This document shows, piece after piece, positions 22,349-37,398 of a stretch of DNA of 64,000 nucleotides. The notes beneath the pieces were generated by a model. It made no database searches and was not told the DNA's origin. It saw only the letters and a list, made by a program, of their open reading frames with translations. The position numbers and the translations under genes were made by a program. Origin of the DNA: Eukaryota sp. TZLM1-RC (lineage: Eukaryota > Protista > Metamonada: BaSk clade); the NCBI GenBank assembly GCA_040285825.1, contig JAUPSS010000012.1, positions 62,001-126,000 of the forward strand, given 5' to 3'. The first letter of the stretch is position 1. The number at the start of each line of letters is the position of its first letter.

Positions 22349-22684
22349 ATGTCTCTTCTCTCAACTAAATCATGGCATCCTGGTAAGCTTAACAACATGA
22401 TCAAGGTAGCCACTGACGAGGAAAATGTTAAGGCTGAACGACAGAAAAAGATTCACAATATACAACGTCGAAAAGCTCAGGATAGAATCAATCTACTCCG
22501 ACAACGGGCAGGTTTGCCTAAACACGATTGGGACATCATTCTTCAAACAGAGGACACTGAGCATGCAGAGAGAAAGCGTCGTGGTACCCCATTAATGCCT
22601 CAACCCCAGCAGAAGCATCCGAGAACAATGAATTCATCTGCTATAAAACAACAAATCTTACATGAAGACCCTCTACCAGGTTAA
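22349..22684 (+). CDS. Cir_N-domain splicing-associated protein (CWC25/LENG1-like)
   Basis: MSLLSTKSWHPGKLNNMIKVATDE...RINLLRQRAGL. The 3' end may be extended by splicing. Confidence 0.75.
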   Translation: MSLLSTKSWHPGKLNNMIKVATDEENVKAERQKKIHNIQRRKAQDRINLLRQRAGLPKHDWDIILQTEDTEHAERKRRGTPLMPQPQQKHPRTMNSSAIKQQILHEDPLPG

Positions 22685-23029: not shown

Positions 23030-23110
23030 ACTTTATTGATTACTTCATCATTCAAAGAGTTCCTTTCAAGGTTGGACTCTTTAAAATCACATAGAAATCA
23101 ACAATAAAGT
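23030..23110 (-). promoter_or_regulatory. SECIS element (type II-like)
   Basis: Minus strand: ACTTTATTG..ATT (helix I), GTGA core, TTTAAAGAGT, loop CCAA with CCTT-GA-AAGG mini-helix, ACTCTTTGAA, TGA, ..AATCAATAAAGT. Lies in the 3' UTR of a gene with a penultimate-type UGA. Confidence 0.85.
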
Positions 23111-23123
23111 GCATGAACGAAGA

Positions 23124-23519
23124 CTACCTTGGTCATCCACCACGGGGTTTGGGAAGTGATCCAATAGTACCCATGGATCTACGGCCTTCAGGAGAAGGTC
23201 TATATGAACCACTTCGCAGGGTATTGATTGCTAAAATGGCGATCAACAGAGCAAAGGCTGGACGCTTACCGACAAGTAGTCCCACTAAGATCAGAGCTAC
23301 GACAACGAACCGTCCATCGATTTGGATGTTACCAAATCGAAGAGACAGGGCTTGGAGCAAACTAACAAGAAGATCAGAGGGTGCAGGTGCAGGTTGCTGT
23401 GTGCTCCTGACGTTTGGCAGTGGTTGAGAAGCTACAGGACGAGGAAACGGTCGTGATTCAGGAGATGGTTCGTCATCAGCAACATCCACGATCTCCCCAT
23501 TGATTATGCGTTTGGGCAT
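23124..23519 (-). CDS. Candidate selenoprotein: FAM241/SelK-like membrane protein, Sec at TGA 23133-23135, 131 aa
   Basis: MPKRIINGEIVD...hydrophobic hairpin...MGTIGSLPKPRGG-TGA-CCA-AGG-TAG, giving GGUPR*. SECIS immediately downstream. Confidence 0.82.
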
Positions 23520-25617: not shown

Positions 25618-27681
25618 TTACAATAAGTCAAGAAGGTCATCATCCTCTTCGACCTTTGCTGCTCCTGCCTCCTCCTCAACTTTAACTGGTACAACATCCT
25701 TATAAAAGCTCTGTGAGGCTTCAAGGTCATACCCGACTCCAAGAACATCCTCAGTCGTGATGGGAAACACATTTTCTTCATTTAATTCTCTGAAAAGATC
25801 AACTGTTAAAATATTATTATGAGTTTGTTTTAAATTTTCCAAAAAATCATTAAACTTTGTACATAATTCAGAATTACCATTACTAACAACGGCTTCCCTC
25901 ATACCTTTAACCAACTTCACCACTCTTTTGAAATTACTGGTTCCAATAGTATTAACCATCAAATCGGAAACTCTATCAGAAGCAATCATCATAGCAGTTA
26001 GTAACTGCGTCGAATCAGTTGCATACTTTTGCAAATCACCAATAGGATCCTCAAATGATAGACTTACCTTGGACTCGACTCTATCATCAAATCTAGGCCT
26101 TTTTGCTTCTTCCTGAACCACTTCTCTAATAGAATCAGACCATTTGGACCTCCTTTTCCCTTTCTTATCAGTAGTTTCCTTAACCGGACACGCCTTGAAC
26201 AGAGCCTCAATATCATCCTTTGATTTATTCACCATTATAGACCGCGGGAACAGAACTGTGGTCACCCTCTGATCACAAGCAACTTTTTCATCCATTCCTA
26301 CCTTACCCAAAGCTCTTGCTCTCACGGTTGAGTAGAAGCTTTGGAGAGCGGGGTTGGGGGTAGAGAACGTGGCATAGTCATCATCACCAAGGGTCATTTT
26401 ATCAATCAGATCAGCACAAAGATCGACATTTTGAGGTTTGGGTTCTGGTAAGTCATCAAAAGACCAAGGTCGAATATCTTCGAAATAGGGTAATTGATGT
26501 AAGATAAAGTAAATTCGATTTCCTTCACCAGTTGGAATCAATACACTAATAGAGGGTGGCGAATTCTTTCGTTTGACTGTTCTCACAAGCAAACAAACCC
26601 GGTTGACCTTCATGACGTGATGGAGGGCAGTAAATGACTGCAAGTGCCTCTCACTTTCGGCAACTAAAACGTCAACACCTGCCATAAACAGAAACCTCGA
26701 GATTTGCGCCTTACGCACAAACCCAATCACTCGAAGCCCCCTAGCTTCAGTATTTAACAACCCCTTCACCTCATCCATTTCCTCCTTCGTCACTGCAACG
26801 GCTGACGTACCATAGAAATAACCTTTGACTTTATCATCTTCCTCAAGAACAATCGAAGGGTCATTTGGATCAATGGTGGCTGAATCCCTTTTTACTGATG
26901 GTAGTGATGCTGCATTGACGTACTCTCCATTTGTATTAGGGAGATCAACGGTGTTGTTTTCAAAAGATGAAGCTTCTGTTGATTTTCTACTGGGCAATTT
27001 CTCCTCCTTTACAAAAGAAAAGGACTTTAAAGGTATTGCATTGACACCTCCAAATTCCAAAGCAAGACCAATTCCTCTATGCATCCATTTATGAGAAAAT
27101 AAAGAGTAATGGTACGTACCATCTGATAGACAATACGTTTGAGCTCCCGTGGATGAGGCTAGGTCTGAGAACCTTGACCACGTGGTGTGAGTGTCCATGG
27201 TGATGGTATTCTCTTGCTGAGATGTGTTGATAAAGTTCATGTTGACAGAGGTGGAAGCCAGGCGTGTGAGGATCTGGTCAATGTTGGAATCATCAACATC
27301 AGAAGTGAAGGGGGAAATCATGTAGATTGTGCGATCGGACTTAGCGGTTCCCATCTGCTCAATATCTTCGTGAGCTACGATTAATGCATCAAGGAGATCG
27401 GCAGAATAGTCTGTGGGTTCTAGTTCAGAAGCAGATATTATAGTACCAATTGTAAGGTGATGAGGCTCTTTAGAAAGGGAAATATGATGGTACCCATCAA
27501 GTTCTTCTGCAAGAACGTTGTTGGTTTCTTCAGTACCACAAAGATATATACAAACATATTCTTTAGGACTATTGATGGCAATACTCTCAAGAACAAGAGA
27601 TGTAAGGTTGCGAGTAGAATCTAAATAAGGTTCTATGTGTGTACCTACATCAATTACTACAGTTGAATAGTTTTTGGCCAT
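25618..27681 (-). CDS. KU80: Ku80 DNA end-binding subunit
   Basis: vWA N-terminus (VVIDVG, ADLLDALIVA), Ku core (KGYFYG, QLPYFEDIR, NPALQSFY), helical CTD and terminal EEDDDLLDLL. Confidence 0.93.
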   Translation of the reverse strand: MAKNYSTVVIDVGTHIEPYLDSTRNLTSLVLESIAINSPKEYVCIYLCGTEETNNVLAEELDGYHHISLSKEPHHLTIGTIISASELEPTDYSADLLDALIVAHEDIEQMGTAKSDRTIYMISPFTSDVDDSNIDQILTRLASTSVNMNFINTSQQENTITMDTHTTWSRFSDLASSTGAQTYCLSDGTYHYSLFSHKWMHRGIGLALEFGGVNAIPLKSFSFVKEEKLPSRKSTEASSFENNTVDLPNTNGEYVNAASLPSVKRDSATIDPNDPSIVLEEDDKVKGYFYGTSAVAVTKEEMDEVKGLLNTEARGLRVIGFVRKAQISRFLFMAGVDVLVAESERHLQSFTALHHVMKVNRVCLLVRTVKRKNSPPSISVLIPTGEGNRIYFILHQLPYFEDIRPWSFDDLPEPKPQNVDLCADLIDKMTLGDDDYATFSTPNPALQSFYSTVRARALGKVGMDEKVACDQRVTTVLFPRSIMVNKSKDDIEALFKACPVKETTDKKGKRRSKWSDSIREVVQEEAKRPRFDDRVESKVSLSFEDPIGDLQKYATDSTQLLTAMMIASDRVSDLMVNTIGTSNFKRVVKLVKGMREAVVSNGNSELCTKFNDFLENLKQTHNNILTVDLFRELNEENVFPITTEDVLGVGYDLEASQSFYKDVVPVKVEEEAGAAKVEEDDDLLDLL

Positions 27682-28061
27682 AAGAGCAACAATGATGAGG
27701 TAGTTGATAGTGAAAGTTTTTTGGTCGATGTAATTCAATTCATTCTGCAGTTTCTGCATTGTACATGTGCTTTCATTATTGGAAGCCTTCCATCACGATT
27801 TCACCAAAATGGATGGTGGTTGTTCCATCCAATCTGGAATATCGATGAGGCGGGAACTTGATTATTATTAAATCTATTGTACTGGAATATCCAACGTGAC
27901 TTAAAGAGTCAGAAAATAAACATACAATACAGTCTTGTATAAACAATAAGAAAACAACTTCTTAAATGATGTTAATGTGTGTATTTCACGTAAAGCAAAT
28001 CTGCAACATCCACATATCAAATTCTACTTTCTAATTTAAACTTCTAGTTTCTCATTCGTCA

Positions 28062-31000
28062 ATGGGATCTCATCCCAAGCTTAACTTGGAAAAAGCCCAA
28101 CTTGTTGATTTTGGTAGAGTAGCTTGCTTCTCCAAATCCACATATGATCTCCACCTCACCAACAGCGGTGGTTCTCAGGCTGAGGTATCCTTCTCTGTCA
28201 CCCAATCTCTTGTGAACCTCGCCATTTCCCCCTCCTCCATCTCCATCCCTCCTGGTTCAGACCAAACAATCACCCTCACCCTTCAAGCACGCGAGAAGGG
28301 TATCTTTAAAGCTTTTGTCCAGGTCACTACCAAATCCAACTCTGGTTACTTTTCCCAAACCACCCTTGATGTCAATGCTTTGGTAGTGGGCACCAAACTC
28401 TCTTTTCACTCCCCTTCCTCTGGTCAACAGCTTTCTGAGCTTAGTTTTGACCGTTCAATTCCCATTTTTTTCGGGGAGTCTGTATCTTTTACCGTTCCCT
28501 TGTTCAATGACACTCCCTCTCGAGCTTCTTTTAATATCGTCCATGACAGAGCTCCTGACTGTTTGGAGGAGTCGATTCTTACTGCTGATGTAATTGATTA
28601 CCTTTCAGTTTCCCCTAAAACAGGTCAGCTTTCCCCTCTTGAAAAATCAGAAATCACCTTTTCAATCAATCCACAGGTTTCCCAGTCAATTATGTCGATG
28701 ATTCAGCGGTTAATAATGCGAAATGAGGTGGCTTCTGTAATTAATTCTAATGGTTTCAGAATTAAATTCATGATTAATGTTAATTGTGACCCAAAAAAAA
28801 GTTCTTTCAACTTATTTCTTAATCTAGATTTTATTTTTCCAGTTGTTAGTTGTTCCCAATATGAAATTTTCTTTCCTGAAACTGGTGTTAACAAGAAGAA
28901 CTCAGTTCCAGTCACGTTGACCAATCAAAATAATCAAGACGTCGCAGTTTCCTTTGACAAAATTGCACATTTCTGTATCAATCCCAGCCAGTCAATTCTC
29001 AAACCAAACACAAGAGCTACATTTATCTGCACTTTTAATCCAAAAAGAAGTGGAAAAATCAGTGGTAAGGTTTTCCTAAATATTGGTAAAAGCAGCAAGT
29101 TTTTGCTCAAATTACTTCCAATTACTCTTTCTGGAAGTTCGTACTTATCGAAGAATAACCAATCAATTAATCTTACCAAAACCAACAATTCTGAAGAAAT
29201 TTACAAGTTGAACACTATTAAAAAACCATTATTTAAAACCGATCCTTCAATTTTAGATCCCCTCAACCCCTATCAATTGGATGTGGAAGAAATGGAAGGA
29301 AATTATGAGCATAGGACTCAATATATCAAACATTTAAGGGAACAAAGGGTCAAAAAAGCTCAAAAAGCACGTGATATCGAAAGGAAAAGGTTTGAAAATG
29401 CAGTTGATTTGGGAATTAAACCTGATGATTCTTTTCCCCACCTTAAACCTTTACCTTTAACCGAATCTGTTGAGTTTGGGTCAAAGCGAAAGGATTTGAG
29501 GGAAGCGGCTTTAGTAAATAGATACTTGGATTCTTCCATTTATATTGAGAAAAAGTTTCCTCCTCCTTCTAAAATAGAGTCCTCTGGGTTGAGGTATTTG
29601 GATGAAGATGAGTTGTCATTAGTCATCACCAGCCAACTTGAGCTAGACTTTGGAAGACTGACGATTGGGTCGAAGGGGGTCAAGTATTTCAATATTTATA
29701 ATGGAACTGATTCAGCTATATCGGTCAAAATCGACGTGACTGGGCATGACTTGATTGACTGTCATCAAAGCACACGTCATCCTCAGCTGGTGCCGGCAAA
29801 ATCAGTTGCTGGTTTTTCAGTGGTTTTAAATTCTGCCAATTTCAATAAAATTGAACAATTTTCTTCCAATGTTAATGTTATAATCAACAACCAGGCGGTT
29901 TTCCAATTTTCCATTATGGGTGAAATCGTCCCGGTCACGGTCAACGCTGTTCCTGATTTGATTGGTTTTGACTTGACCCATGACGACCCTGAAAATTTGG
30001 GCAAATCGACAGAAGAAAAGTGTGAAGAGATCTTTGCCTTAGCCAATCCAGGGAATCTTAATTTAGATTTCAAATTAATGCAAAAACCCTCGTTCTTAAT
30101 TATTTCTCCTACTTATGGTTCAATTTCGGCATTTAATTCTACTAAAATCAAAGCCGTATTTATCCCGGATGAAAATTTGTCTTATTCGGATTCAGTGGTT
30201 TTCAAAATAACTAATGATTACACAATCAAAGTAGACATTGTTGCTAAAATTCCAGAAGGGAAACTGGTGACGTCATCAACGGTCAGAAAAGGGCTTGATT
30301 TTGGTCTTTGTTTAGCCGGAGATTCTGTTACTAAATCGTTTTTGATCAAGAATGTAGGTAAATTTGATTCATTTTTCAGAATTCATTCAAAATTGTTATC
30401 CAAGGCTGATTTTACCATCTCCCCAAGCAGTGGTCTAATTAAAGCTGCTGGAGAAGCGGAAGTTTCTATCAAATTGGCCCCATCAGTTCAATCAGAATCT
30501 TCAAGACTTTCTCATGTTTTTGAGCTTTTGTGCTCTGGACAACCTAAAATTAAAATACATTGTAAAGCCAAGGTTGACGTGGCTAAGATCAAAGTGAATC
30601 CTGATTCAATCATTTTTGATAGAGTCTTTGTTGGTCAAACAGGGCACGTCACTGTTGACGTTTCCAATCTGTCTGAATGCAGTACAGATGTTCTTTTAGA
30701 CTTTAGTGACTATCCCGCCTTTGATGTGGATTTTTCCAAAAGTACACCTAATTCTATACTATACCACAAACCTCCGATCAATCAAAAGTTGATTGATTCG
30801 TCCCCCAGTCAAAAACAACCTTCCATTTCTAATAGAAGGGCCTATTTGTTAAGATTGTCCTCACTTGCCAGCAACAAAGTTTGTTTGAGTTATTCACCTA
30901 AAAAAGTTGAAGAATTGACATTTGAAATACCCCTCTCTTTTCCATCATTCAATTTTGATTGTGACTGTCAGTTTTCAATCAAATCAACGTCATCATTAGG

Positions 31001-34000
31001 GAGACTATTGTTGACATCTGATTATATCAACTTTGGTAGCAAAGCAATAATAACTGAGGAAATGCCTGATCCTCTGTCACTTTATCAATCAAATCTGTTA
31101 GTTTCCTCCTCTGAAATGTTCAATACAATCAATTTTAAAATCAAGTCCCCAAAAGACTCTCCTTTCCGCTGCTTAAGTCCTCCTGGTTTATCAATTTCTC
31201 CACAAGACAAAGTTGATTTGCAGTTTTCTTTTTGCCCAAAATCAATTGGTCATTTTTCTGATCAATTTGAATTAATTTCTGATAATGGTGAACATTACAT
31301 TGTCAAGGTAACAGGAAATGCTACTTCTCCTTGTATTATGTTTAGTCAAGACCGAATTGTTTTTCCACCATCACCTCTGGGAGTTGAACTCACAACCCTT
31401 CTCACTCTCACTGCTGTTGGTATCCCCTCGACTACGCTAGAGGCAAGATTGCCCCCTGATGAGACGAGAATTCCAATCACTGTTGATTTTCTTAATGGTA
31501 ATTCACTGGGCTTTAATAACCCTTCCTTATCGGTATTGGTTAAAGTCAAGAGTGACTATTCCTTATCCTTTGTTGGCTGCATTGATTTTATTACCGATTC
31601 AGGAATTAAATTTTCAATAACTTGTTGTGGGATTTTTGATAATTCATTCCTGACACTTTCACCATCATTAAAATTAAATGAAAATTACTTTCAAAATATC
31701 TTAAATAGCTCAAAAAACAATGGCAGTTACAACTCAGGGTCAATCAACTTTGATTTTCCATCAATCAATACGTGTGGGGGTCAGGGGGTTAACAACTCTG
31801 ATTATTTGGTATCTTTAGGAAACTTTCCTCCTTTTGAACCACTTCCTATTCCTAGTTTAAATGAAATTATTTCAAATTCCAACCAAAATTTGGTATTTTC
31901 TTTCTTGAGTACTTTTATTTTTGATAAATCAGCCCCCAAATGTTTTGCTGATTTCTTTTCTAATAATTGTCGATGTTTTAAACTGCTTGTCGAGAAAGTG
32001 ATTGGAAAACAGTGCAATCAGCTCAAAATCACTTCAAATAATAAAGATCAAACCCAAATTTTGCTAAACTTCACCCAAACTGCGCTAAAATTGTTGAAAT
32101 CTCGTGGTTTGTTATTAAACACTGTAAGGGCCACCTATCTCTTACCAAGAGAGCAGTTTATTGAACTTTTACTTGAGGAGTACCAATATTTTCGCCCCAA
32201 TTGCGATTTATCATCTGTTCCAATCAAAAGTGAGCTCTATTCGTCACTTGATGCCCAATATTTGGAGGTATCGAGCTCTTCTTGGACTTTGCTGTTACAC
32301 CAGTGCTTCAAAGTTTGTTTGTTGGATCCGCTTAATCCTGAAATTTTAAATATTTCAGACCAGGCTTCTGGACTAGTCAAGTTTGGATCTGAAAAATCAA
32401 AGAATTTCTATTCTTATTCTGAAACTTTGCTGCTGGCCTGGATTAATTCATTGGTAACCAAGTATTTTCCTCAAATGGATAGTAAAATTTCGAATTTTGA
32501 TACTGATTTCGCTAATTGTGTCCCCTTTGTTTGTCTATTGCTACATTATTTACCATTTTTCTGCACATCTAGTTTTTCATTTTTGAATGAATTTTCTGAT
32601 TTATCTTTAATTGATTCAGAAACTCTAAATGTTTTATTTAGAAACTATAGAAAAGATTGTGCTGGTGACATCCTGAATATTTTAACAAGAGATTTGGGGT
32701 TTGATCTAACGATTTCTATTAATGATTTACTCAATCCACTTAACAGAAATGTGCTAATTCTCCTTACAATGCTTGCTCACGTGTTGCCGGCATATAAAAA
32801 AGAATCAGCTGATCAATCAAATTTGATTGAATTCAGAGCTAAATTAGGAAGTGTTGTGTCAAAACAAATTTCTATATCTAATTCATTCAATCAACCTGTT
32901 ACTTATAGAATTATTTTTCACAACAATCATTCCAATACTTTTTCAACTGAATCAAATTTATTTGAAGTAGGTGCCCAACAAAGTGATAGTTTACGAATCG
33001 ATTACAATTGCAAATTTTCGAGAAAAGATCAATGTGGTCTCTACTTAATTCCTCTTAAAGTCGGCTTGACTTACCCTCAACCCCATTCATTTACCCTTAA
33101 ATCAATCCCCCGGATGACGCGATCTGCTCAAAAAGTTGACGTGATAGGATCATTATATAGTTTGACTTCTCACGACTTTCCTGTACAAAATCCATTTGAT
33201 AGCGAAGCCAATTTGACTTGTCAAGTAGTCGTCAGCTCAGTTGATGATCTTTTGGCTCCAAATTTTAAAAATTTCGAATCATTAGCCTCTTCTGTCAACC
33301 CCTTTACTCTCCATAGAGATTCCATTTCTCTAAAAGCCAATGAATCCACTACTCTCACCATTGACTTTTGCCCATTTCTGCTTGGTAATTTTTCCGGTTT
33401 TATTTGTTTTTCAGATGAGAATTTAGGTGAATTCATAATAGATTTAGAGGGTGTTTCTGAACTTCCAAAGGCTGCAGCGTCAACAGAGATTAGGACGAAT
33501 GCTGGTGAAAATACGGAGTTCAATATTCAAATTCCAACGAAAAATTCTCTATTTGAGTCTATTTGTAATAATAACGATGATGTAGAAGTTAATTCATTGT
33601 TTGAATCTTATTCAAATGATAACGAAATTGCTTATTTTGTTCTTAACAATGCAAAAACGGCCACTTTGCCCAATGCCTTCACGATAAACAAGTCTAGAAA
33701 AGTGTCCCAAAAGTCTAATATTTCGGGGTTAGATCGGGCAAAGCTCACCGAAGGAACACGATCAATCAAAAGAGAAGGGTCGATTATGACTGATTTATCG
33801 ATGAGAATGGGACAAAATTTTAAAAATTTCAATAATTTAACTGGAAATTTTAGGTCAAATCAATGTGGAAGACACGATATTAGAATTGTTTTAGTGTCCA
33901 AATTCGACATCAGGGTCGTGTATTTGACTGCCCACGTGACGTCTTCGGCAACCAGCCAATCATCAACTGTAGAGTTTAAGTGTCCTTTAAAGCAAAATTG

Positions 34001-36209
34001 TACAAAAGAGATTACAGTTAACAATGATTCTAGTTTTGATGAAATTTTCGATGTCAATATATCAAACAAGTCAAATTTTGCTGGAAATTCTGAATTATTC
34101 ATTTCCAAAAATTCGAAATCAACCCATTCTATCACATTTACGCCTTCCATTCTCGACAAACAAATGACATCATCAATCACCTTTACAGGTCGAGTTTCCC
34201 GTCAGACAGTTAAGTATAATTTGCTTGGGATTGCAGAGTTTCCCAAACCAGAAAAGAAACTTTCATATAATGTTATTGTACGAGAACCCTCTAAATTTTC
34301 AATCAAAATTCCGTCAAATTTTACCAAAGGGTCATTGTTAAAGGTCAAAACTGATCTTGATTGCCTTTCTGGGGACTCTACAGTCGTTATGGACTCCCAA
34401 AATCCCCAGAAATCCTTTGACTTTATCATCAGGTCAACGAAAATTGGTAGTTATTCTGGAATTCTCTCTTTGATTGATTCGCAGAATAATTCAAATATTT
34501 CTGTTTTTGAGGTCGTTGTAGAGGTTACTTCTCCACCTGCCAAGGATCAAATTTTGATTGAATCGACTGTCATCGAGTCTACAGTGGTGTCTTTGCTGAT
34601 CTATAACCCCTTAGCAGTTGACGTGCTGTTTGATGTAGTCTTGAATGGTCCTGGTCTAAGAGGAAAGCAATCATTTTTGATTGAGAAGGGATCAAACTAT
34701 AATTATGAATTTTATTTTGAACCCTATATGACCAATATTTCAAACACGGCGTCTGGGTTTGTCAAATTTTTACCTCATGATCATCGTTTGGAGGAGTCTT
34801 GGTATGAGTTGCTACTCTCCGTTGTTCCATCAAACCCGACTATGATCAGTGACGTGACATGCGAAGTTGGCAGTCAAAAACTAATCAAGTTGCCGGTATT
34901 GAACCCTAGTACTGAAAATTTGGAGTTGTCAGTGTCTGTGGATGACACATTGAATTTTTCAAAACCTAGCGGCTTTGTTCAAATTGCGGGTAATTCAACC
35001 ATGGATGTTTCTATTGTTTTTGTTCCATCAAATTTTTCAAATTTTTCAACAATGGTGACCATAACGTCAATTGAATATCCTTCGCTTGTCTGGCAGTTTG
35101 AAGTTTTGGCAGAGGGGCTCAAACCAACTGTAAATGATCCATTAGTGATCCCTTCTTGTCTGGGAAAAACGTCATCTGAAATATTGACATTTAGGAATCC
35201 TTTTAATTACAATATACAAGTTCAAATATCTGCTTTTGAAGGTGATTTGTTCAGTGGAGATCAACCCAAAGAATCTGATGAAAATTTTGTATTTGGAAAT
35301 TTTCAACTTCGGATCAAAAATTCTATCGTGTATGTCGAGAAATTTGGTGTTCTTCACCTGCCAATCGACTTTACCGCCATTGACAATTGCAAATATTTGG
35401 GAACTGTTGTTATTGAATGCTGCAACAATGATGACAAAGTTCAGTGGAACTTTCCCGTTATTGGCCAATCATATTTGATTGATTGCAATCCTTGTATTCG
35501 TACTGTATCTGCCGAATTGAGGTCAAAATTTGAGCAAAATTTGGAATTTTTCTTTTCCAAGCTTTCCATGGATAGTACTTTTTCTTTAAAATTAGATTCG
35601 AATTTCAACAGCAAATGGGTCAATTTGCCCTCAAAAACCACATCAAAGCGGTTCAAGGCTTCAATCCCAATTACCTTTTCTCCCACCAGATCTCTGTCAA
35701 GCACTGCTAATATTGTTTTTACTAACGATTCTACAGGCGGACAATGGATTTTCCCAATCAAGTTTATAGGCGATGGTTCTAACGTTTCTGATGGGGAAAT
35801 CGTGCTCAATTCAAAAAGTCTCAATATCCCAGTTAGTTTTGATTTAAAATTGACCAATGTTGTTAACCAAGAGGAGTCATTTGAGGTGTTTGTCAAAGCT
35901 AGCGAGTTTTCGGTTTCGCCCATGTCTGGCACCTTACCTCCTCTCAGTTTAAGACAATCAATTGTTTTGGAAATCACCTTTACTCCAACCCATTCGAAAG
36001 TAATTAATTCAATTTTGGTTATACGGTCAAGTTCTTTTGAATGGAGGTATCAGCTTATTGGTAATCCGCCTAGTTACGAAATCCCAACAGGAACGCCTAC
36101 TTTCAGTTCAAGACTCGACTATAAACATCTGAATGCATTAAAAAAGGCGCAAAAACCAAAAAATAGAAATTTTATTAAAAGTAATATTGCTAGATTGGGG
36201 CTAAAGTAG
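28062..36209 (+). CDS. CFAP47: Cilia- and flagella-associated protein 47 (multiple ASH/Ig-like domains + calponin homology domain)
   Basis: 2715 aa; repeated LDFG...L.N...F.I.P..G.I ASH repeats, central SETLLLAWIN...NFDTDF CH domain, C-terminal WRYQLIG.PP.Y. Confidence 0.85.
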   Translation: MGSHPKLNLEKAQLVDFGRVACFSKSTYDLHLTNSGGSQAEVSFSVTQSLVNLAISPSSISIPPGSDQTITLTLQAREKGIFKAFVQVTTKSNSGYFSQTTLDVNALVVGTKLSFHSPSSGQQLSELSFDRSIPIFFGESVSFTVPLFNDTPSRASFNIVHDRAPDCLEESILTADVIDYLSVSPKTGQLSPLEKSEITFSINPQVSQSIMSMIQRLIMRNEVASVINSNGFRIKFMINVNCDPKKSSFNLFLNLDFIFPVVSCSQYEIFFPETGVNKKNSVPVTLTNQNNQDVAVSFDKIAHFCINPSQSILKPNTRATFICTFNPKRSGKISGKVFLNIGKSSKFLLKLLPITLSGSSYLSKNNQSINLTKTNNSEEIYKLNTIKKPLFKTDPSILDPLNPYQLDVEEMEGNYEHRTQYIKHLREQRVKKAQKARDIERKRFENAVDLGIKPDDSFPHLKPLPLTESVEFGSKRKDLREAALVNRYLDSSIYIEKKFPPPSKIESSGLRYLDEDELSLVITSQLELDFGRLTIGSKGVKYFNIYNGTDSAISVKIDVTGHDLIDCHQSTRHPQLVPAKSVAGFSVVLNSANFNKIEQFSSNVNVIINNQAVFQFSIMGEIVPVTVNAVPDLIGFDLTHDDPENLGKSTEEKCEEIFALANPGNLNLDFKLMQKPSFLIISPTYGSISAFNSTKIKAVFIPDENLSYSDSVVFKITNDYTIKVDIVAKIPEGKLVTSSTVRKGLDFGLCLAGDSVTKSFLIKNVGKFDSFFRIHSKLLSKADFTISPSSGLIKAAGEAEVSIKLAPSVQSESSRLSHVFELLCSGQPKIKIHCKAKVDVAKIKVNPDSIIFDRVFVGQTGHVTVDVSNLSECSTDVLLDFSDYPAFDVDFSKSTPNSILYHKPPINQKLIDSSPSQKQPSISNRRAYLLRLSSLASNKVCLSYSPKKVEELTFEIPLSFPSFNFDCDCQFSIKSTSSLGRLLLTSDYINFGSKAIITEEMPDPLSLYQSNLLVSSSEMFNTINFKIKSPKDSPFRCLSPPGLSISPQDKVDLQFSFCPKSIGHFSDQFELISDNGEHYIVKVTGNATSPCIMFSQDRIVFPPSPLGVELTTLLTLTAVGIPSTTLEARLPPDETRIPITVDFLNGNSLGFNNPSLSVLVKVKSDYSLSFVGCIDFITDSGIKFSITCCGIFDNSFLTLSPSLKLNENYFQNILNSSKNNGSYNSGSINFDFPSINTCGGQGVNNSDYLVSLGNFPPFEPLPIPSLNEIISNSNQNLVFSFLSTFIFDKSAPKCFADFFSNNCRCFKLLVEKVIGKQCNQLKITSNNKDQTQILLNFTQTALKLLKSRGLLLNTVRATYLLPREQFIELLLEEYQYFRPNCDLSSVPIKSELYSSLDAQYLEVSSSSWTLLLHQCFKVCLLDPLNPEILNISDQASGLVKFGSEKSKNFYSYSETLLLAWINSLVTKYFPQMDSKISNFDTDFANCVPFVCLLLHYLPFFCTSSFSFLNEFSDLSLIDSETLNVLFRNYRKDCAGDILNILTRDLGFDLTISINDLLNPLNRNVLILLTMLAHVLPAYKKESADQSNLIEFRAKLGSVVSKQISISNSFNQPVTYRIIFHNNHSNTFSTESNLFEVGAQQSDSLRIDYNCKFSRKDQCGLYLIPLKVGLTYPQPHSFTLKSIPRMTRSAQKVDVIGSLYSLTSHDFPVQNPFDSEANLTCQVVVSSVDDLLAPNFKNFESLASSVNPFTLHRDSISLKANESTTLTIDFCPFLLGNFSGFICFSDENLGEFIIDLEGVSELPKAAASTEIRTNAGENTEFNIQIPTKNSLFESICNNNDDVEVNSLFESYSNDNEIAYFVLNNAKTATLPNAFTINKSRKVSQKSNISGLDRAKLTEGTRSIKREGSIMTDLSMRMGQNFKNFNNLTGNFRSNQCGRHDIRIVLVSKFDIRVVYLTAHVTSSATSQSSTVEFKCPLKQNCTKEITVNNDSSFDEIFDVNISNKSNFAGNSELFISKNSKSTHSITFTPSILDKQMTSSITFTGRVSRQTVKYNLLGIAEFPKPEKKLSYNVIVREPSKFSIKIPSNFTKGSLLKVKTDLDCLSGDSTVVMDSQNPQKSFDFIIRSTKIGSYSGILSLIDSQNNSNISVFEVVVEVTSPPAKDQILIESTVIESTVVSLLIYNPLAVDVLFDVVLNGPGLRGKQSFLIEKGSNYNYEFYFEPYMTNISNTASGFVKFLPHDHRLEESWYELLLSVVPSNPTMISDVTCEVGSQKLIKLPVLNPSTENLELSVSVDDTLNFSKPSGFVQIAGNSTMDVSIVFVPSNFSNFSTMVTITSIEYPSLVWQFEVLAEGLKPTVNDPLVIPSCLGKTSSEILTFRNPFNYNIQVQISAFEGDLFSGDQPKESDENFVFGNFQLRIKNSIVYVEKFGVLHLPIDFTAIDNCKYLGTVVIECCNNDDKVQWNFPVIGQSYLIDCNPCIRTVSAELRSKFEQNLEFFFSKLSMDSTFSLKLDSNFNSKWVNLPSKTTSKRFKASIPITFSPTRSLSSTANIVFTNDSTGGQWIFPIKFIGDGSNVSDGEIVLNSKSLNIPVSFDLKLTNVVNQEESFEVFVKASEFSVSPMSGTLPPLSLRQSIVLEITFTPTHSKVINSILVIRSSSFEWRYQLIGNPPSYEIPTGTPTFSSRLDYKHLNALKKAQKPKNRNFIKSNIARLGLK

Positions 36210-37326: not shown

Positions 37327-37398
37327 GCCTCGGTGGTCTAGGGGTATGATTCTCGCTTAGGGTGCGAGAGGTCCCGGGTTCAAATCCCGGCCGAGGCC
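37327..37398 (+). tRNA. tRNA-Pro (AGG)
   Basis: GCCTCGG/CCGAGGC acceptor stem, A box TGGTCTAGGGG, CTCGC-TTAGGGT-GCGAG anticodon arm, CCGGG-TTCAAAT-CCCGG T arm. No intron. Confidence 0.97.

Follow-up and report, generated by a model that had tools for sequence, protein, structure and literature searches.

Two Skoliomonas species very probably carry a real selenoprotein gene, the annotation of which is truncated at the selenocysteine (Sec) codon. The gene is carried on contig JAUPSS010000012.1 (assembly GCA_040285825.1, strain TZLM1-RC), within the 64,000-nucleotide stretch of DNA analysed here, hereafter the window, to the numbering of which all coordinates refer unless a locus is named. An earlier reading of this stretch (the original prediction) had proposed a selenoprotein gene missed by ORF calling; this very probably holds, the in-frame TGA, the short extension behind it and the SECIS element all being kept in an orthologue from Skoliomonas sp. 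RCL. The case depends on this comparison between species because the hairpin pattern is mildly unusual in itself, TGA is an ordinary stop, and the SECIS_1 model of Rfam finds no match in TZLM1-RC.

The in-frame TGA and the orthologue of Skoliomonas sp. RCL

In public gene calling, the TZLM1-RC gene stops at a TGA and yields a 128-residue product. Read further along the minus strand, the 3' end of this ORF is GGT GGA TGA CCA AGG TAG, identical to what the original prediction had described, and the coding features are as follows:

23136..23519, minus strand: codons 1-128 of the ORF (Met1-Gly128), with the ATG at 23519; the 128-aa product of public gene calling
23133..23135, minus strand: in-frame TGA, proposed Sec129; in the RCL orthologue, aligned without gaps, the in-frame TGA comes one codon sooner
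23124..23132, minus strand: Pro130-Arg131, CCA AGG (23132-23127), and the proposed true stop TAG (23126-23124)

TGA also serves as an ordinary stop in the window, where it ends 4 of the 15 long ORFs.

With the 128 residues before the UGA as query, an exhaustive phmmer search of 1.84 billion protein representatives returned a single real relative (P0002) of 131 aa with an E value of 2e-15 and 40% identity over the full length. It is the hypothetical protein RCL1_002324 of Eukaryota sp. TZLM3-RCL (NCBI; assembly GCA_040285805.1), a strain corresponding to Skoliomonas sp. RCL of Williams et al. 2024 (PMC11316075). The matches P0003-P0005 of the same search (E about 3e-4 to 7e-4) are long proteins that match via Pro-rich or hydrophobic stretches, and were rejected. 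A word-indexed protein search, run with the single sequence and with a two-sequence profile, retrieved nothing beyond the two orthologues, and two metagenome scans with patterns of the N-terminal and membrane regions found no relatives; by sequence, the family appears so far confined to the two Skoliomonas species.

The product called in RCL ends in ...PRPRG, and the DNA runs on with TGA GGA CCA AGA TAG. Aligned without gaps, the tails read CGT GGT GGA TGA CCA AGG TAG in TZLM1-RC (RGGUPR-stop) and AGA GGG TGA GGA CCA AGA TAG in RCL (RGUGPR-stop); the TGA and the adjoining GGA are swapped between the species, with no change to the frame, to the Pro-Arg end or to the TAG. The stretch CCAAGRTAG is common to both, its single difference being synonymous (Arg). 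The alignment of homologues at the Sec position, which had been suggested together with the original prediction, gives Sec against Sec: in the orthologue, too, an in-frame UGA is followed by a conserved continuation of the frame, with the TGA one codon earlier and the GPR-TAG tail retained. As deposited, RCL1_002324 (131 aa; locus L002, 3001-3408) is cut at its proposed Sec codon, and the full product would be 135 residues long.

As to the genomic surroundings, the upstream gene on the same strand is Ku80 in TZLM1-RC (25618-27759, minus strand) and DNA ligase IV in RCL (L002 1-28); synteny is not kept, yet both are genes of non-homologous end joining.

Protein architecture and family membership

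The two orthologues share 11 of their first 16 residues (M-P-x-R-I-x-N-G-x-I-V-x-V-x-D-D). A Pro-rich linker is poorly conserved and contains indels; the blocks common to both comprise an amphipathic helix, the motif D-G, a pair of hydrophobic stretches linked by an invariant G-K-R-P-A turn, an invariant L-R-S-G-S-x-R and a basic tail ending in S-L-P-x-P-R-G. An AlphaFold2 model computed on the two-sequence alignment, which is of low confidence (pLDDT 58), has strands at residues 3-6 and 9-12, helices at 47-61, 69-83 and 87-102, and a disordered tail with pLDDT <50. At this low confidence, residues 3-12 may form an N-terminal beta-hairpin motif, and the hydrophobic helices 69-83 and 87-102 may be joined by the GKRP turn. 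The predicted topology would be that of a membrane hairpin or of two short spans; the two termini would then face one and the same side, presumably the cytosolic one. Neither orthologue contains a Cys residue, so that Sec would be the sole redox-active residue of the protein. The AlphaFold2 model and structure searches of the Atlas yielded unspecific helical hairpins alone (TM 0.36 or less), and a sequence search of the PDB gave ATP synthase subunit a at 9.8 bits, a chance match.

Searches of Pfam at E<=10 with both orthologues and six sub-pieces (N-terminal, central and tail) matched none of its families, SelK_SelG (PF10961) and DUF4605 (PF15378) included. By current sequence methods, the protein thus appears as an orphan family with a SelK-type tail, outside the catalogued families. 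The suggestion that it may represent a new selenoprotein family stands in so far as no catalogued family claims it by sequence; two known families, FAM241 and SelK, are weighed below.

The tail itself bears out the original prediction in being of SelK/SelS type: the ends, GG-U-PR in TZLM1-RC and G-U-GPR in RCL, are basic and Cys-free, with Sec 2-3 residues from the end of a Gly-rich, disordered segment. The protein would accordingly be classed, on its predicted features, as a tail-Sec membrane selenoprotein of the SelK/SelS kind. Of these two, SelS belongs to the ER-type membrane selenoproteins, and its Sec sits within a C-terminal end rich in Gly (G-G-U-G), to be compared with the G-U-G-P-R of RCL. 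SelS has a long coiled-coil, which the Skoliomonas protein probably lacks. SelS also differs in its reported length of 189 aa and Cys174-Sec188 selenosulfide (PMC3628699), whereas the Skoliomonas protein is free of Cys and has no sequence similarity to SelS in the phmmer search.

The first of the two families to be weighed is that of animal FAM241 (FAM241A/FAM241B; DUF4605, PF15378), of which the Skoliomonas protein might be a homologue provided with a Sec tail. When the RCL protein was run through the feature search of the ESM Atlas, the best named neighbour was a chordate DUF4605 cluster (score 0.85, 174 shared features, a match at the level of a lead); unnamed clusters from diatoms (128 aa) and oomycetes (157 aa) were listed as well. 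The N-terminus of FAM241B (R-I-L-A-N-G-E-I-V...DDDP) is presumably closely similar to residues 4-18 of the TZLM1-RC protein. An NG-centred motif like that of residues 4-12 presumably occurs at the N-termini of FAM241B and SELENOK alike. The FAM241 proteins, of 121-132 aa and associated with the ER, are described as having a highly conserved 20-residue N-terminal stretch, followed by a DUF4605 region that contains a C-terminal transmembrane segment (PMC11880036). These two modules, an N-terminal stretch and a C-terminal hydrophobic region, appear to recur in the alignment and low-confidence model of the Skoliomonas protein, which has a similar size of 131 aa. Against this homology speak the missing Pfam match to DUF4605, the Atlas score in the range of leads with agreement in 4/10 best named matches and no usable match for the TZLM1-RC protein, and the structure searches that gave unspecific helical hairpins only. 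FAM241 is moreover reported to be absent from unicellular eukaryotes and known just from multicellular animals, with no reported Sec or SelK-like tail (PMC11880036), and none of the papers searched connects FAM241 to selenoproteins. The FAM241/DUF4605 likeness put forward by the original prediction was thus not established, with no match in Pfam, no other members in phmmer and a lead-level Atlas neighbour for the RCL protein only, and homology to FAM241 is held here to be a tentative, rather doubtful reading.

It is unlikely, too, that the protein is an ordinary SELENOK orthologue, diverged in sequence, keeping the same ER role and having gained an inserted linker and an extra hydrophobic segment. 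SELENOK is described as an ER membrane protein with Sec in an intrinsically disordered segment (bioRxiv 10.1101/2021.05.15.444318). SELENOK and, on its predicted features, the Skoliomonas protein are small membrane-anchored proteins with a disordered, basic, Pro/Gly-rich tail, in which a single Sec follows Gly-Gly at 2-3 residues from the end and has no Cys partner. In the TZLM1-RC protein Sec stands three residues from the C-terminus with x-Arg behind it, and the protein is free of Cys; in such a tail, failed decoding costs just two or three residues. The I-x-NG-x-V/I-x-D motif at the N-terminus of human SELENOK and its RRxGxI...GGUGR tail presumably resemble the Skoliomonas protein as well. 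What argues against orthology is that SelK_SelG remains without a match at E<=10 for the orthologues and their pieces, that no SelK stands among the phmmer matches in the 1.84 billion representatives, and that SelK has one N-terminal transmembrane helix, whereas in the Skoliomonas protein a linker of roughly 35 residues and an amphipathic helix come first, and the hydrophobic part, from about residue 69 on, is formed by two short helices (69-83 and 87-102 in the low-confidence model) around the GKRP turn. A diverged SelK and a FAM241 homologue need not be mutually exclusive readings.

The probable SECIS element, its spacing and the likely poly(A) signal

The reading of the TGA as a Sec codon requires a SECIS element downstream on the same strand. 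The hairpin found there in TZLM1-RC is made up of the following parts:

23030..23110, minus strand: SECIS element, whole stem-loop (folds, pattern scan, core strands invariant between species)
23110-23102 with 23038-23030, minus strand: outer helix, 9 bp
23098-23094 with 23046-23042, minus strand: helix I, 5 bp
23087..23090, minus strand: 5' strand of the core (non-Watson-Crick quartet), GUGA (RUGA); UAUGUGA does not differ between the two species
23085-23076 with 23060-23051, minus strand: helix II, 10 bp
23071-23069 with 23064-23062, minus strand: apical mini-helix, 3 bp, with a 4-nt loop
23047..23050, minus strand: 3' strand of the core, UGAU, in which the tandem G.A pairs involve the GA at 23049-23048; UGAUGAAGU is invariant in both species
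23032..23037, minus strand: AATAAA, likely poly(A) signal, within the 3' strand of the outer helix

All the SECIS features that can be checked by hand are present in this hairpin, in the right order and at the right distances. A U.U position lies between the GUGA core and helix II, and the 5' strand of helix II is followed by CC and then by the unpaired AA at 23073-23072. The unconstrained fold has -21.4 kcal/mol (z = -3.8 against dinucleotide shuffles), and the same layout is obtained at -21.7 kcal/mol when the kink-turn core is kept unpaired; a minimum-free-energy alternative pairing places the AA inside a 10-nt apical loop. Folds and sequence reading agree with the well-formed SECIS of the original prediction, with its RUGA/GA core, 10-bp helix II, AA, mini-helix and 9-bp outer helix.

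In RCL, GUGA is found at L002 3437-3440, 40 nt after the TGA, with the AA 11 nt later and UGAU at 3477-3480; the distance from the G of GUGA to the U of UGAU is 40 positions in both species. In the DNA alignment the two core strands, UAUGUGA and UGAUGAAGU, are invariant, and the sequence between them is largely different. Helix II of RCL is composed of 3 + 6 bp (9 bp) with one bulged C, as against 10 bp in TZLM1-RC; the RCL mini-helix behind the AA has 4 bp, helix I 7 bp and the outer helix 8 bp. The three core-proximal pairs of helix II are U-A, U-A and U.G in TZLM1-RC versus G-C, A-U and A-U in RCL, with both sides changed, a covariation that is to be read as one pair of sequences from two species. 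When the core is held unpaired, both RNAs share the layout outer helix, helix I, core, helix II, AA and mini-helix; a RUGA/GA quartet, a helix II of about 9-11 bp, an unpaired AA and a helix I, downstream on the same strand, are thus present in either species.

The closest described RNA is the GUGA_AA type of SECIS (Rfam SECIS_1, RF00031), with which the Skoliomonas elements have in common the RUGA...AA...GA kink-turn core, a helix II of 9-10 bp, the AA 11-13 nt after the core and the mini-helix; GUGA instead of AUGA is lineage-wide in Chlamydomonas, Ostreococcus and Amphimedon, i.e. in green algae and a sponge, and so is already known (PMC3473315). SECIS_1 is the top match on the RCL hairpin, over the full model, with 21.3 bits and E 0.042, under the gathering score of 35, and it has no match on the TZLM1-RC hairpin even at E<=10; neither species therefore reaches the gathering score. 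Further differences from RF00031 are the closeness to the UGA and the probable poly(A) signal in the outer helix, both described below. The top Rfam match on the TZLM1-RC hairpin, a plant miRNA precursor model with 26 bits, far under threshold, is a generic hairpin match. At the gathering threshold, Rfam found nothing across the window except a tRNA-Pro (AGG) at 37327-37398 (plus strand), the sole match of ARAGORN as well.

How often such structures arise was estimated with two ad hoc SECIS pattern scans over both strands (128 kb), with first-order Markov shuffles as the baseline: each gave 2 matches per window, the selenoprotein site among them, where 0.6 and 0.25 are expected in the shuffles. 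By itself, a SECIS-like structure is only mildly rare in the window; what lifts it above chance is its place just 3' of the TGA, which recurs in the orthologue; the structure alone would not suffice for this. Likewise, a bulge-tolerant scan of the 6.4-kb RCL locus gave a single match, exactly at the RCL hairpin. A second SECIS-like pattern of the window, at 30941-30993 (minus strand), has an AUGA core, an 11-bp helix II with one bulge, AA, UGAU and a G/C-rich helix I, and runs antisense to an ORF of 2715 residues at 28062-36209; chance probably accounts for it, because 0.25 matches are expected per shuffled window. The other match of the stricter scan, at 33505-33556 (plus strand), has a GUGA core, falls within the same 2715-residue ORF and is likely a chance match, since it has no in-frame TGA context.

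The spacing between UGA and SECIS, which the original prediction had called unusually short at about 43 nt, is indeed so: the distance from the UGA to the GUGA core is exactly 42 nt in TZLM1-RC and 40 nt in RCL, and in TZLM1-RC the outer helix starts 22 nt after the UGA. In mammalian selenoproteins the SECIS lies 207-5207 nt from the UGA (PMC3316567), and the minimal spacing was put at 51-111 nt by a Dio1 study in a mammalian system, as cited there. The conserved 40-42 nt distance thus lies below the mammalian Dio1 minimum and would make this a record-short candidate Sec spacing.

The likely poly(A) signal of the gene sits in the 3' strand of the outer helix, so that cleavage downstream of the hexamer would leave the SECIS in the mRNA; the RCL locus has an AATAAA at L002 3496-3501, which likewise overlaps the outer SECIS helix. 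Such an overlap of a candidate 3'-end signal with the SECIS in both species fits very compact 3' UTRs. For the other genes of the window, the first AATAAA follows the stop codon at anything from 3 to 242 nt, which is uninformative either way. A small convergent gene at 22349-22684 (plus strand; 111 aa as called, no recorded Pfam family) has its end about 350 nt away from the putative poly(A) signal.

That the TGA is a plain stop, with the protein ending at Gly128 and the hairpin being accidental or else a 3'-UTR or terminator element of another kind, would agree with TGA being a normal stop in the TZLM1-RC genome, with the 0.25-0.6 SECIS-like patterns per shuffled window and with the absence of an Rfam match on the TZLM1-RC hairpin, yet it is very improbable, as it needs the coincidence of a (G)PR-TAG that follows the TGA in frame and differs synonymously, in proteins just about 40% identical, of a same-offset hairpin with both core strands invariant and helix II altered yet pairing, and of an AA at the right distance in two species, a pattern match at <=100 nt from a given stop being expected with a frequency of about 2e-4 per species (an estimate from 0.25 per 128 kb).

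In the favoured explanation, that of a selenoprotein gene, the mRNA would carry a UGA at codon 129, the Pro-Arg codons and then a UAG stop, followed by a eukaryotic kink-turn SECIS of the GUGA...AA...UGAU type with its core 42 nt past the UGA; SBP2 and eEFSec, bound to this SECIS, would bring Sec-tRNA(Sec) to the UGA and allow synthesis of a 131-residue protein. The product would be a small membrane protein that begins with a beta-hairpin motif and continues through a disordered linker rich in Pro to an amphipathic helix and then a pair of short hydrophobic helices; its flexible basic Pro/Gly/Arg tail would bear Sec three residues from the end. To judge from this architecture, its function may be selenoprotein K-like, the membrane anchor presenting a lone selenol on a disordered cytosolic tail; devoid of a structured redox fold, the protein might use this selenol for a diselenide bond between molecules or to act on a membrane-bound partner.

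Probable selenocysteine use in skoliomonads

Skoliomonas is a soda-lake flagellate, and skoliomonads are free-living anaerobic metamonads with extremely reduced mitochondria. Among metamonads, Spironucleus and Monocercomonoides are published users of Sec, which Giardia and Trichomonas lack (PMC2874811, PMC6759080). The Skoliomonas genome paper (PMC11316075) contains no occurrence of 'seleno' or 'SECIS', and no earlier report of Sec decoding in skoliomonads was found; the gene described here provides sequence-level evidence from two species for the decoding of UGA as Sec in this lineage, and contributes a candidate family of selenoproteins whose members are cut short by gene callers. The conserved 40-42 nt are, in addition, a natural test case for the closest SECIS-to-codon distance in eukaryotes; were such a spacing to work in Sec insertion, a different geometry of the decoding complex would be implied.

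What the gene would mean for protein families hinges on its affinities. If it is a diverged SelK, only its novelty is lost. A more far-reaching combination, in which the Skoliomonas protein is a FAM241 homologue with a SelK-type Sec tail and its SECIS works at 40-42 nt, below the mammalian minimum, is improbable. If the FAM241 homology is true, the protein would be both the first unicellular FAM241 and the first selenoprotein of that family; FAM241 and SelK would then go back to one ancient family of small membrane proteins of the ER, as branches that share the N-terminal NG motif, animal FAM241 would stem from a selenoprotein whose tail was lost, and the redox, selenol-bearing tail would offer a first functional handle on this family of the animal 'unknome'.
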